Position numbers and translations under genes: made by a program. A stretch of DNA of 64,000 nucleotides from contig OZ037767.1 of the NCBI GenBank assembly GCA_964035545.1, positions 23,638,628 through 23,702,627 on the forward strand, in the 5' to 3' direction. This document shows positions 30,820 to 42,575 of this stretch, piece by piece. Position 1 is the stretch's first letter. The number at the start of each line of letters is the position of its first letter. Source of the DNA: Bugula neritina. Taxonomy: Eukaryota; Animalia; Bryozoa. Below the pieces are notes generated by a model. The model was not told where the DNA came from, did not search any database, and saw nothing but the letters and a program-made list of their open reading frames with translations.

Positions 30820-33800
30820 ATGATGCTGCTGCCTCTGCAGTTATGGATCACATCTGGTGTAATACTATTTACTACAGTCTCTGCCAGGTATGTCATTAGA
30901 AAATGCATATATAGTAGGATTACTGATTGCTTATTACATAAAAAATTTATAAATTAATTTAATATCTCAGAAAAAGATTTGTTTTCGCAAGGCATGTTAC
31001 TTTCACCGACAATATACTGAATAAAGCCTTTTTTTAGTGATCAGTAATTACTAAGACTGTGACTGATGCTGAGTACTAAATTGAATTAAGGCTTGGTTTG
31101 CATTTGTTGACTTCCAAGAGCTGGCATAAAATTCAAAGTGTGACTATGCAACTTGAATTTATATTTAGCAGAAAAAAAATCATAACTAATCATAACTCAT
31201 AAAACTAACTTAACCACTTTTACAGTCACAAAATGAGTTTGTTTTTGCTTGGCTAGACTTTCTTGCCTATTTGAATCAGCTCTTACTACTGTTAGTACTT
31301 GTTAACCATAGGATTAATTATGCAGCACTGCAATGCTAGCTTTACTATTGTATTTGTAGTCAACCAGATGCTGATTTGCTGGAGACATATTATGGTTTTG
31401 GTGACCTAACTCTTTCTTCTTTTGATTATGGCCAGTTTGAAAACAGGGCCGTTAAAAGAATTCAAGAAGATAAATATCAACATGGCTCATACTTTCTAAT
31501 GTATTTGGGGTTTATACTGAAGCACACACCTGGAGAGCCTATGGAACTGTTTCTTGGTCAGCCGGATCAACAACTGTTATACAGATATCAAACTGGAAAT
31601 TCTTCAGTGGCTGAATTTTCTGTGATCACAGATATGGTGCAATATAATAAGACAAAATATGTACTTAGTGACTATTTGAACAATTGTGTGAGAGAGTACG
31701 ACTCCGAGACTGACATGTTTACCCCTCTCATTGGTGCTTGTGCTGAACACTATAGCACATCTGTTGGCAGTCTTCAACCAGGAGTAGCCATTGCTGGTGA
31801 CTCAAATTTCATAAGTGGTGCTCTAGACATTGAGCTTGTAGAATCTGCCAACTACTTCATCTTGTGTGACCACGGCTATGGGCAAGTAACAACATACGAT
31901 CTCAACACAGGTCTTGTACAACTGCTTCTAAACTCCAATGATAACCCATTGCCTTCACCCACATCTTTGCTGCTCAGCTCCGATGAAAAGTCTCTTTATG
32001 TCAGTCATGCCAACGGACTCTCCAGAGTTGATCTGGAAACGCAAGCAGTGCAGCTTCTTGTAGGAGAAGCAAAAGTTTCTCTGAGTACTTACCCACCAGT
32101 TGTTTTATCAACCGGTCCTTTTCACAGCACCACGTTTGGACCTCTCGGCTCTTTAACTTGGCTTAAAGACAATGAAATCTTATTTGGCGTCAGCGATACC
32201 CTCAATACTTTGATTGTATTAGATTTGATTCTAAACCAAACCATGGGCAGTTGCACAGGTTATTATGCTGCATATATAGTAATTTTCTTTATCAATTTGA
32301 AAGGTTATTTACCTATTTTTCTTCAGTATAATAAAAAAAGATATACGGTATATTTATGTTTTCTTGTATGGAACCACACCAATGACGTTTTGACCCATTT
32401 ACGCACAATAAGAAAAAAATTTCAATGTTATAGATGTTTTCATTGCGCTTTTGTTGTTTGGGGTAAAAAATATGAATCTCTCAAAAAAAAACTTTTTTGC
32501 TTGGCTTTTCATCTATAACAAAGAGTTTTCTATTTTACTCAATGTTACTATTGAAATTTTAGGAGATGACCAATTTAACAGCTCTCTGACTGGGTCCCAG
32601 ACCTTCTGCAGACTTCATAAGCCAAATGCAGCTACATTTTCAAATGGTTCAGTATATGTAGCAGCTGTAACCGAAGGAGAGTTTACTTTTCTTTCTCCAA
32701 GCTCCTTGTACGAAATTCAAGTAAATTTTAGCCAAATATACTCAAGACAAGTAGTAGCTTCAACAACTACAACTAGCAAGCCTAATTCTAATGTTCTGTG
32801 TCCACATTGCTCTATTCAAGTATCTGTTGGCAGCTTGGAAAAAGCCGAGTACAACCTTAATGGTTTGCCTCGGAGGCCGATAGACTTTATGATTGAAGAT
32901 GAATACAATGATGGAGAGTTTTATTATAACTCTGGACATCTCCTCTTAAAGTATGTTCCAGGAGAGCCTGTCCAGCATGTGTTAGGAAAGGACTACGAAG
33001 GTATGAGCTCCAAAGATATTCGATATAAAGCTGGCAACTCGTCTACAGCTGAATTTGCCCTTCTTAGTGGAGTAGCACAAATAAATAAAACTATAATGCT
33101 AGTGGCAGACTACCTAAACAATTGCATTCGTCAATACGATATGGTCACAGACGAAATCACCGAATTCATCGGAAGTTGTGAAGGTACACCATCACAATCT
33201 AGAAAAATCCTACCGGGTCAGGAAGTTCCAGCAAACACTCACTTCCTCTCTGGTCCTCTAAAAATTGTGATCATCAAATCGCAGAACTATTTAATTGTAA
33301 TGGATTATGTCTATCAGCTAATCACTCGCTATAGCTTTGAGAAAAAAACTGTTAGACTGCTTGGAGACCAACTCTCAGATTCGCTACCTAACCCTCGCGA
33401 CATATTACCTACAAGTGACGAAAGTGCAATATATGTCGCACACAGCAACGGCTTGTCTCGAGTTGACCTGAGCACTCTTGAAGTAACGTTATTAACTGGA
33501 GAAGTTTCTAGTAGTGCTAATGATGTACGTAATATTGACTTTTCACCTGGCTCTTTTGATACTGCAGTGATTGGGTACATTGAGACAATTCGCTGGTTGG
33601 TGCCAGATCGCTTGATGGTTACCATCGGAACTCGTTTAAATGAAGAATTGATATTCATTGATTTAGATGAAAAAGAAATCTATTCAACATGCATTGGTAT
33701 GTTAGTTTTGATGATTTTTATTTGCCTTCCTTGTAATATAAACAAGATTTTTATATTTAACAAGTTTATTGTACATAATCTTAACAGAAGTCATAACTTT

Positions 33801-39800: not shown

Positions 39801-42575
39801 CAGTATCAAAAGTCTGATAATAATTTCGTTTTATTAGAATACTTAAACTTCACCAATTCTAATTAGCCTACTGTGTAGTGATACAACTATATATATATAT
39901 ATATATATATATATATATATATATATATATATATATATATATATATATATATATATATATATATATATATATATATACTATATAAAATATTTTATTTATA
40001 TTATAATCACAATGCTGAGGGGAAGGGTGGCCATTCACAGACGCATAGAATATACGTCATTGTAGTATAAGTTTCCTTTAAAAAAGTCACTAATTGCACA
40101 TATTTTGCAATTCTATATCATAAAATTGTTAGGTGGCAAAAGACCTTTAAAATAACAATTATTATTTTAGCAAATAATAAGCGTTTTTAATCTCTTCTGG
40201 TAATTCTGTTTCTGCAAGCTTGTATGTTTAATCTTCTTCGTTATCTAATGACTACTAGTGAAGTTGTTAGATATGGGTAGTATAGAGTTTACTCTTACTA
40301 TTGTAGATACAGAGACAACCATACCGATAATTGAGAAGTTTCTAGAAGAGGCTGTCATCCTACAAGATTTCAAACATGCTAATGTTCTAGAAACACTTGG
40401 TGTCTCTATTCCAGACACAGATACGCCTCAGGTTGTGCTTCCTTACATGGCCAATGGAGACCTTAAATCACTTATTCAGATGGAGCACATGGTGCGTGCA
40501 ATGTTGTTGACATTTAAGTTTGAAACAATAATATTAACAAAGTTAGTTTCAATAGTTGAAGCTTTTCCAACTTTTGGCTTACAAACTTTGATGTGTGGCT
40601 TCCCCTTTTTAGGGCTTCAGGTGGTCAACTTCACTAGTGCACAAATATTTTGACATCTTGCTTATTGCAGCACTGACTTCACATTACATGATAGCATTGC
40701 ATAATATCATACACTTAGCACCTTACAGTATGCAGTATAGGCTGTATATGATACCTCAGTCTGAAAAATTATTTCATAACATTGTGTCCGACTATAGCAT
40801 GGGGTGTGTATTTCAAGACGTGTTCTTATGCTTTATATTTAGAAGTTTTCTGTTGGAGATTTAATGCACTTTGCCAAGCAGATTGCCTGTGGCATGGAAT
40901 ACTTATCAAATAACAAGTTTATTCATAGAGATCTTGCAGCTAGAAACTGTTTGTAAGTATACACATGTGTGACTGTATCACTTTGAATATGTATATGTGT
41001 CTGTAAGTATCACTTTGAAGATGTATGTGTGACTGTAAGTTTGGCAGTAGTTGTGGTGCAATGGCTTAAGTGTGCCTATATTGCAGATTACAAAATATTT
41101 ACATTTACTTTGAGTTATATTTCAAAAAACTGAGAAACTTCCGATTACTTTCAGGGTTAGCGACAAGTACATTGTGAAGATTGCCGACTTTGGTTTGTCC
41201 AAAGACATCTACAGCAATGACTACTACAGAAGAGATGAGCAAAGCAACACTGCTCTTCCTGTCAAGTGGTTAGCTATAGAAAGTTTGAGAGAGGGAAAGT
41301 TCAGCACAGAGACTGACGTGGTAAATGACTATGTATCATCAGCTAACAAGAGTGTGTTTTACTCATGCATGTTTATTTCATTTGGGTGTGACAAACTCAA
41401 GCACAAACATATGTGCCCTCAGATCTAAAGTGTATGCTAGGACAATGTAAGTCTGCAGGTAGTGAGAGAGATGTGCGTGTGTGTGTGTGTAAATATATAT
41501 AGTTAGAGTGAAATGTGTAGTTTCCATGTATGACCTGCTTATCATGGGGACGGGTCAATATTTTGAAGGCCTGTTGGTCCGAAGGTCCATCGCTTAAAAA
41601 ATATTTACCTAGTTCACATCCACACACACATATGGCAAGTCATGTTTAGGGGTTCGGGGTTTGAGGTTCAAACTTGAAACATATTAGGTACAATATATAT
41701 ATATAAGCTTACACAATAAAAATTAATAACAGTGTTATTTCATTAGACCACTTCGTTCCGACCAATGAACTTTTGGACTAACGACCTTCGGAAGATTGAC
41801 TAGTCTCCCTTATTATGTAGTTTTTTATGTAGCCACTCAGCTCATTTAAAACTACACTGTGTGGATTATGGCTATTATTCTAGTTAATTATAAATCTGAT
41901 GATGTGTATATTTTGCTATTTTGATACTTCAGGTTGGTCTTCTACAGTATATATTTTAAAAAAACATTACAGTGACAGACTTTGTGAACTTTGTGAGCAG
42001 ACAAACATGTTATTTAGCTCAAAATAATGTCCAAATGACTTGAAACCGTTAATTCCAGTTGCTAGATATTTGTTTAGTTAACAATATTCTGGTACATAAG
42101 CTGTTGTCATTGTGCTTGCAGTGGTCATATGGAATTTTGATGTGGGAGTTGTGCACTCGAGGCTGCCAGCCGTACCCTGATGTGGATGCGTGGGATATAG
42201 GGTGTTACCTGGAAGAAGGTAGAAGACTACACCGGCCCAACTACTGTCCTCTTGTTATGTATGTGTTAGATGTCTATAATACTCAAAATAAAAATATCTG
42301 CATACTGCGAATATTTAGCTTTCTATGAAATGAATGAACTTGAAACAGAACTGTGTCACATTTTCCGTAGCTTTGGTATCATGAGCCAGTGCTGGTTGGA
42401 GAACCCTGAAGAAAGGCCCTCATTTACAGAAATACTTGAACTTTTAAATAAACTGTTAGAAAATACAGAATGTTCTCCACAAAGTCCATATTCTTACATC
42501 CGAGAGTATACTAAAGACATTCCTGTAGACTATGTTGAAGATGCAATGGAAGTAGAGGTGAGCTGTATCACCTAA
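30820..42575 (+). CDS. RTK-A: MET/RON-like receptor tyrosine kinase with 2x NHL-like propeller, Sushi, 3x IPT ectodomain; 18 coding exons, 1490 aa
   Basis: Exons 30820-30887, 31360-32258, 32563-33696, 33809-33985, 34191-34375, 34586-34743, 34941-35096, 35468-35555, 35819-35870, 36077-36195, 36907-37125, 38929-39151, 39491-39682, 40307-40491, 40843-40952, 41155-41320, 42122-42258, 42371-42575 are all GT-AG and phase-consistent (4473 nt). Signal peptide; [27 protein letters not shown]; [48 protein letters not shown]. Confidence 0.93.
39888..39976. repeat. (TA)n microsatellite
   Basis: Direct inspection; intronic and expanded in A only. Confidence 0.97.
41546..41809. mobile_element. MITE-like element in a kinase intron, shared with RTK-B (about 46198-46427)
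   Basis: Imperfect terminal inverted repeats ggggacgggtcaatattttgaagg and ccttcggaagattgactagtctccc. Confidence 0.55.

Follow-up and report, generated by a model that had tools for sequence, protein, structure and literature searches.

Can a MET-type receptor tyrosine kinase (RTK) carry a head other than Sema, which is regarded as the constant feature that defines Met receptors throughout the bilaterians? This question is raised by a gene in a 64,000-nucleotide stretch of the bryozoan Bugula neritina (assembly GCA_964035545.1, contig OZ037767.1, positions 23,638,628 to 23,702,627 of the forward strand; here called the window, in whose numbering coordinates are given unless a chromosomal position in Mb is stated). 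The gene, designated gene A, has tandem paralogs designated B and D to H, and its product is a type I receptor composed of a signal peptide, two NHL-type propellers, a Sushi domain, three IPT domains, a transmembrane segment (TM), and a MET-type kinase. We consider it probable that gene A encodes a predicted active RTK of MET descent in which Sema, PSI and IPT1 were swapped for an NHL propeller and a Sushi domain, and which acts in contact recognition. Taken separately, its structure and origin are proposed with high confidence, and the contact-recognition role is close to an even call.

Gene model and transcript support

The open reading frame of gene A comprises 4473 nt (1490 aa), runs on the plus strand from the ATG at 30820 to the TAA at 42575, and is divided into 18 exons, with all introns of the GT..AG type. 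Exon 1 (30820..30887) encodes the signal peptide (aa 1-22), which was read from the hydrophobic N-terminus, and has a counterpart in the paralogs. Splicing was checked with contigs assembled from four public runs of four studies, which are presumed to be RNA, aligned to window positions 33600-39599. Contig depth in this interval was high over exons and low over introns, and every joint from exons 3-4 through exons 12-13 was seen in spliced contigs, most of them in two to four runs. An alternative model of 1501 aa with a longer exon 8 was rejected, since the joints set the donor at 35555|35556; as the 33-nt extension of exon 8 also holds a TAG in paralogs D and G, the donor at 35555 and the length of 1490 aa were adopted. 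The initial annotation, which was made from the sequence of the window, had proposed this 18-exon frame, and it is borne out by the open frame, the splice sites and the joints at exon 8. The union of propeller exons with kinase exons that it assumed holds as well, since the contigs link each exon to the next from exon 3 through exon 13.

The best match in a search with exon 3 was B. neritina EB796_020453 (91% identity). Its contig, in assembly GCA_010799875.2, shows this series of exons again, along with the Cupin_8 neighbor, at 92% nucleotide identity, and the gene is annotated there just as hypothetical fragments.

The head: two NHL-type propellers and a Sushi domain

Most of propeller 1 is encoded by exon 2 (31360..32258, aa 23-322); exon 3 (32563..33696, aa 323-700) supplies its last blade, a CPHC linker and most of propeller 2, and exon 4 (33809..33985, aa 701-759), which has RNA joints on both sides, the last blade of propeller 2. 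Each propeller is thus split in the same way, with its bulk in one large exon and its last blade opening the next, and the alignment of exon 4 to the beginning of exon 3 indicates that each ring is completed by the blade from the following exon. The two repeats are about 34% identical to each other (E 1e-49). Exons 2 and 3 yielded no Pfam domain and no PDB sequence match, exon 4 gave a weak TEN_NHL match (E 0.008), and the NHL family PF01436 was matched in 8 of 66 family members.

AlphaFold models of exons 2 and 3, built exon by exon on alignments of relatives, reached mean confidences (pLDDT, predicted local distance difference test) of 88 and 83, respectively. Their NHL matches have Z scores of 24-28 over 260-300 residues: the exon 3 model, for which Foldseek and Atlas searches were also run, matched SOQ1 (Z 27.9), NHLRC2 (Z 27.5) and teneurin-2 (Z 25.2), and the exon 2 model matched SOQ1 (Z 25.0) and NHLRC2 (Z 24.6). 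Teneurin matches of the propeller models lie at Z 20-25. The models, the alignment of exon 4 with exon 3, and the structural matches point to six blades per propeller. No Sema chain occurred among the 50 best structural matches or in the PDB sequence search, and the same PDB search linked the Sema exon of a Met gene of this genome on C4, used as a positive control, to plexins and MET, with E values from 1e-12 to 1e-9. In agreement with the initial annotation, both propellers are therefore modeled as NHL-type folds and not as Sema, and the N-terminal seven-bladed Sema domain that characterizes MET and RON is absent from gene A. Exon 5 (34191..34375, aa 760-821) encodes the Sushi/CCP module in a single exon, as had also been proposed; its PF00084 match (E 1.5e-6) passes the cut-off, and it ends at a phase-0 intron. 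The module stands where MET and RON have a PSI domain, which was found only in the C4 Met.

The silence of Pfam on exons 2 and 3 and the presence of adjoining kinase-less propeller genes might suggest either that a degenerate Sema domain forms the head or that a separate propeller gene was misjoined to a kinase. The NHL folds and the lack of Sema matches beside a working positive control speak against the former, and the RNA joints, together with an exon order kept in four paralogs and in another species, against the latter, so that this explanation is largely refuted and has next to no probability.

Stalk, membrane span and kinase

The first IPT is encoded by exons 6-7 (34586-34743, 34941-35096), the second by exons 8-10 (35468-35555, 35819-35870, 36077-36195), whose joints are seen in RNA, and the membrane-proximal one by exon 11 (36907..37125); exon 12 (38929..39151), likewise bounded by RNA joints, adds the last IPT strand, the TM and the start of the juxtamembrane region. 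Exon 6 has a TIG match in Pfam (E 0.008). A profile of the first IPT from which Met rows had been excluded scored 23.2 bits against residues 657-682 of human MET, which correspond to IPT2 in MET numbering, and 0.0 bits against IPT1 (568). In the C4 Sema-Met gene, introns are located in phase 0 before IPT2, in phase 2 within IPT2, and in phase 2 before the GG of IPT3; gene A has the same set, the Met IPT1 intron is placed elsewhere, and the other non-Sema receptors of the genome share those introns that were compared. A tblastn comparison of the gene A IPTs with the Sema-Met locus gave matches too weak for numbering (the best, at E 0.02, was to IPT1); the IPT2 assignment is based on the profile search and the intron phases.

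The three IPTs of the initial annotation fare differently: the first is upheld by profile and introns, the third by a weak profile match (E 0.03, to the last IPT of plexin-A2), and the second, which has no profile score of its own, is placed by its position and by intron phases, including the phase-2 intron before GG. On these grounds the three domains are equated with IPT2-4 of MET. That gene A has three IPTs, not the four of MET and RON, is explained by an exchange at the phase-0 intron before IPT2 that removed Sema, PSI and IPT1.

Hydropathy indicates a single TM at about aa 1118-1138. The kinase and the tail are encoded by exons 13-18 (39491-39682, 40307-40491, 40843-40952, 41155-41320, 42122-42258, 42371-42575). 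The kinase motifs are GxGxxG (1196), VAVK (1217), HRDLAARN (1313), DFG (1333), YxxxYY (1341-1346) and LPVKW (1356), so that the tandem activation-loop tyrosines and the intact catalytic motifs of MET and RON are all present, and the TM and active-looking kinase noted at the outset are sustained. MET is the best single-domain PDB match of exons 14 and 17 and shares first place with ROS1 for exon 16. Aligning exon 16 to ROS1 opens a gap of two residues in the activation loop, whereas alignment to MET does not; for exon 17, one EGFR entry ranks first through containing two copies. We assign the kinase to the MET type from its sequence, with a tree whose references all come from the same genome.

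MET carries a bidentate C-terminal docking site with a YxN motif that binds Grb2, and a juxtamembrane Cbl tyrosine. Both are missing here: none of the tail tyrosines (Y1463, Y1465, Y1469, Y1477) is followed by N at +2, and no tyrosine occurs from the TM to aa 1204.

Relatives in the genome and in other species

The genome keeps a Met of the Sema-PSI-IPT-TM-kinase type at C4:9.480-9.492 Mb (minus strand). Its kinase sits on a long branch, and its activation loop carries a single tyrosine in place of the two of MET. MET-type kinases with laminin/usherin heads, consisting of laminin-N/discoidin-like and laminin-EGF domains, are located at C2:14.11, C2:14.58 and C5:17.45 Mb, and in the two C2 genes, which were compared, the body is joined at the same phase-0 intron before IPT2. 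The stalk of the C5:17.45 Mb gene includes a mucin-like frame of 640 codons that is rich in Thr and Pro, and four near-identical MET-type kinase genes form a second cluster at C5:16.62-16.71 Mb. A many-intron NHL-Sushi-IPT-kinase gene with one propeller is found at C3:6.25 Mb. In the clade formed by this gene and those at C3:24.33 and C6:14.77 Mb, the activation segment varies (LPLRW or PRPVKW), and the C3:6.25 Mb gene has no tandem tyrosines. At least 131 related single-exon NHL-type propellers occur in the genome (C2, C7, C8 and others), most of them in tandem arrays near which no kinase match was seen; several of the propellers are followed by Cys-containing exons.

Outside Bugula, a metagenome contig (L051; 41% GC, head about 28% identical) carries a complete one-propeller gene, with a second kinase arranged in tandem, and keeps the tail motif Y-x-Y-x-R-[DE]-Y-T-K-D-I-P. 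The order of two propellers and Sushi recurs on two contigs from other samples (L039 and L066). A related protein was found in the metagenome assembly that holds L051 and in a sample labeled BRYA16, which from its label would belong to a study of plastic debris (PMC5069773) where bryozoans accounted for 30-90% of the eukaryotic rRNA reads. The species behind L051 is probably a bryozoan. On another contig of a different species (L053, 3477-6274), a propeller-Sushi gene seems to end in a short hydrophobic tail resembling a glycosylphosphatidylinositol (GPI) signal, and no IPT or kinase was seen in it. Among 1.84 billion representatives searched, all strong matches were about 250-460 aa long and came from Bugula and marine metagenomes, long matches being weak generic NHL repeats. 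A search with a kinase-exon alignment yielded four contigs, all from a single metagenome assembly, plus an unrelated kinase, and a search with the tail exon matched just one near-identical cluster.

Origin of the fusion

The kinase tree was built without kinases of other phyla; its outgroups are INSR-, ROS- and DDR-like kinases that the genome also encodes, named by their motifs. In this tree, the NHL-headed kinases lie on one side of a branch with support 92/90, together with two kinases of unread head; the cluster and L051 join at 99/99, the laminin-headed kinases are neighbors, and Sema-Met falls outside these groups. In the tree of heads, the receptor heads form one group (92/86) with the same order as the kinase tree, and propeller 1 and propeller 2 each cluster across species (99/97). 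Since the receptor heads are one group and each propeller groups across species, the trees argue that the NHL-Sushi fusion arose once and that the doubling of the propeller is older than the species split. Capture of the head from the large arrays of propellers without kinases is unsupported: the array propellers sampled fall outside the receptor-head group, on other branches.

The IPT2 profile match and the intron phases place the exchange of Sema, PSI and IPT1 at the phase-0 intron before IPT2. A head swap on a MET body, as originally suggested, is thus upheld, but its scope has changed: IPT1 was lost as well, a whole family and not one gene is concerned, and Met itself was retained. An unrelated head on a Met-type body in a genome that keeps a Sema-type Met, with an exchange point readable from intron phases, departs from the accepted stability of this receptor.

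The same trees could be read as evidence for an RTK class of spiralian or bilaterian age, not invented by bryozoans, in which the IPT stalk bears heads other than Sema and which has been overlooked or filed as "HGF receptor-like". The NHL- and laminin-headed kinases group apart from Sema-Met, and constraining the NHL clade with Sema-Met was mildly rejected (approximately unbiased test, p-AU 0.04); moreover, the searches are blind to full-length or distant multi-exon relatives. The confinement of strong matches to Bugula and marine metagenomes argues against such an age, and we hold this history to be improbable.

The tandem cluster and the rest of the window

The cluster at C3:23.58-23.71 Mb contains four two-propeller kinase genes (A, B, D and E), three kinase-less genes (F, G and H), and relics. 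Gene B (45474..60193, minus strand) is an intact paralog of 18 exons and 1496 aa arranged tail to tail with gene A, to which it is 87-95% identical by region, with lower values in the TM and juxtamembrane region (78%) and Sushi (83%). Paralog F begins outside the window and ends within it (62616..62684, minus strand) at a stop 23 codons into exon 12; it has two propellers, ends ahead of the TM, and has no kinase. G and H, convergent at C3:23.618-23.632 Mb, each have one propeller derived from propeller 2 and show no match past exon 10; they are possibly secreted forms. The three kinase-less genes are probably soluble decoys or dying copies.

Relics in the window comprise kinase exons at 540-1622 (minus) and 2993-8018 (plus), a broken propeller at 2144-2681, and IPT exons at 22644-23090. 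A Cupin_8/JmjC-like gene (26800-29300, minus strand) lies head to head with gene A, and is an annotated neighbor in the other B. neritina contig too. Genes A and B have a common 3' flank, in the form of inverted copies of about 510 bp (84% identity) at 42583-43071 and about 44986-45480, and a Pro-rich frame of 143 codons without a Pfam match lies between them (43620-44051, minus strand).

Selection and gene conversion

Pairwise ratios of nonsynonymous to synonymous divergence (dN/dS) were obtained among genes A, B, D and F and the second assembly, GCA_010799875.2. They were 0.06-0.15 in the kinase and 0.21-0.32 in the IPTs; the Sushi domain (60 codons) reached 0.9-1.1 in two pairs, both with gene B. 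Sites with three or more residues were few, 4 in exon 2 and 10 in exon 3. This pattern indicates that the cluster genes are functional and that the head is freer to change than the kinase, without being hypervariable. Among A, B, D and F, synonymous divergence (dS) is 0.08-0.09 in exon 2 vs about 0.25 elsewhere, and gene E is 87-95% identical to A in exons 6, 7 and 14 and 31-78% in the other exons. Mosaic identity and uneven dS suggest gene conversion in the cluster.

Two functional readings draw on these data. In one, gene A is an ordinary growth-factor receptor of development that responds to a single conserved, secreted ligand and serves budding, metamorphosis or repair, and its extra copies are neutral duplicates. 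Purifying selection on all regions and the conservation of architecture and tail motif across species fit this, and PMC4883820 cites reports of kinase inhibitors blocking Bugula metamorphosis. Tandem expansion in two species, mosaic identity, truncated copies and relics would, however, be unusual for a single-ligand RTK, and we find this reading unlikely. The other makes gene A an allorecognition or symbiont-recognition receptor of fast-evolving specificity, comparable to the tandem allorecognition loci of other colonial animals. The host is colonial, the genes are in tandem with kinase-less partners, the paralog heads have deeply diverged (34-57% identity between A and E), related propeller exons abound in the genome, and there are the high Sushi values with B. 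Fast evolution is nevertheless hard to reconcile with a propeller dN/dS that never exceeds 0.63 and with so few multi-residue sites, and the 131 other propellers belong to other subfamilies; our assessment is that this is decidedly unlikely.

Proposed mechanism

The mode of action that we consider most likely is drawn from what is known of RTKs and MET, and from teneurins, where NHL propellers serve as binding surfaces. Recombination in the phase-0 intron ahead of IPT2 would have put an NHL propeller and Sushi onto a MET body, and the propeller would have been duplicated in tandem after this head exchange. Held out on the IPT stalk, the propellers may bind a macromolecular cue displayed on a surface, either a protein or a glycan of neighboring cells, matrix or microbes. 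Cue binding would pair two receptors, with Y1345 and Y1346 phosphorylated in trans, and the conserved tail tyrosines (1463, 1465, 1469, 1477) could then recruit SH2/PTB adaptors. Because the YxN Grb2 site and the juxtamembrane (Cbl) tyrosine are missing, output and down-regulation should differ from those of MET. We favor the view that the family behaves as a birth-and-death recognition family, and because of this behavior and the truncated copies a recognition role is preferred over a fixed growth-factor role.

Several points weigh against this proposal. No domain-wide positive selection was found, and propeller dN/dS of 0.14-0.63 gives no sign of domain-wide diversifying selection. The ligand side is inferred: HGF is an unlikely ligand because its main binding domain is gone and kringle matches in the genome are scattered, with at least three in separate places. 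Among the contigs of the four runs over 33600-39599, none runs from head to kinase, and most are less than 99% identical to gene A and derive from close paralogs, alleles or other lineages, so the expression of gene A itself is only likely. The MET-type grouping expected of the kinase was recovered among the kinases of this genome, but Sema-Met joins the others against INSR-, ROS- and DDR-like kinases at a weak 85/79. Finally, plexins and the related Met-LP end in the same three PSI-free IPTs, and Met-LP is a possible donor of the body instead of Met.

A bolder form of the contact-recognition proposal, to which we give a minor chance, sees the MET stalk and kinase as a plug-in body that takes unrelated heads at one intron, with the NHL-Sushi branch diversified for self/non-self or symbiont recognition through paired signaling receptors and secreted decoys. 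If true, this would open the first molecular route to how bryozoan colonies recognize one another or their symbionts. The genes of the cluster are concrete candidates for receptors by which a colonial animal that bears symbionts perceives neighbors or microbes.

Comparison with known systems

In the literature searched, which was mostly outside subscription journals, no description of an NHL-Sushi-IPT kinase was found, in agreement with the initial annotation, which knew of no RTK class with this architecture; nor was an account found, in animals, of a tyrosine kinase coupled to an NHL propeller outside the cell, or of laminin/usherin-headed MET-type kinases. Ectodomain shuffling is common in invertebrate RTKs, which limits the surprise.

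With MET, RON and protostome Met, gene A shares a MET-type kinase, an activation loop of MET length with YxxxYY, the stalk from IPT2 onward and a single TM, and with the Sema-Met of its own genome it shares kinase intron positions. It differs from MET and RON in having two NHL propellers and Sushi in place of Sema, PSI and IPT1 and in forming a tandem multigene cluster, and from MET in a tail without YxN and a juxtamembrane region without tyrosine. Although stalk and intracellular part are MET-like, we do not class it as MET, because Sema, PSI and a fourth IPT are wanting. The laminin/usherin-headed kinases of the same genome have the same IPT2-onward body under a non-Sema head and occupy neighboring kinase branches, but their heads are built of laminin-N/discoidin-like and laminin-EGF domains.

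Met-LP is likewise a lophotrochozoan Met-like kinase with a different ectodomain and three PSI-free IPTs before the membrane. It has, however, a complete plexin ectodomain (Sema, three PSI-IPT, three IPT), which gene A does not have, and it contains neither NHL nor Sushi. Lophotrochozoan Met and Met-LP were all Sema-headed in a survey gathered by searching Sema proteins (PMC6374515), an account repeated in PMC10084454.

For the head, the NHL domains of teneurin, NHLRC2 and SOQ1 are the closest folds of both propellers (Z 20-28), but at 14-18% identity, and a thioredoxin domain, a YD shell and EGF repeats are all missing from gene A. The type II teneurins have EGF repeats, a YD shell and a toxin-like tail but no kinase, whereas gene A is type I and ends in a kinase. 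Among the structural matches is 1rwi, which we take to be Mycobacterium PknD. With its extracellular NHL propeller, TM and cytoplasmic kinase, PknD is a functional analogue of gene A, although it is a bacterial Ser/Thr kinase of opposite topology and unrelated origin.

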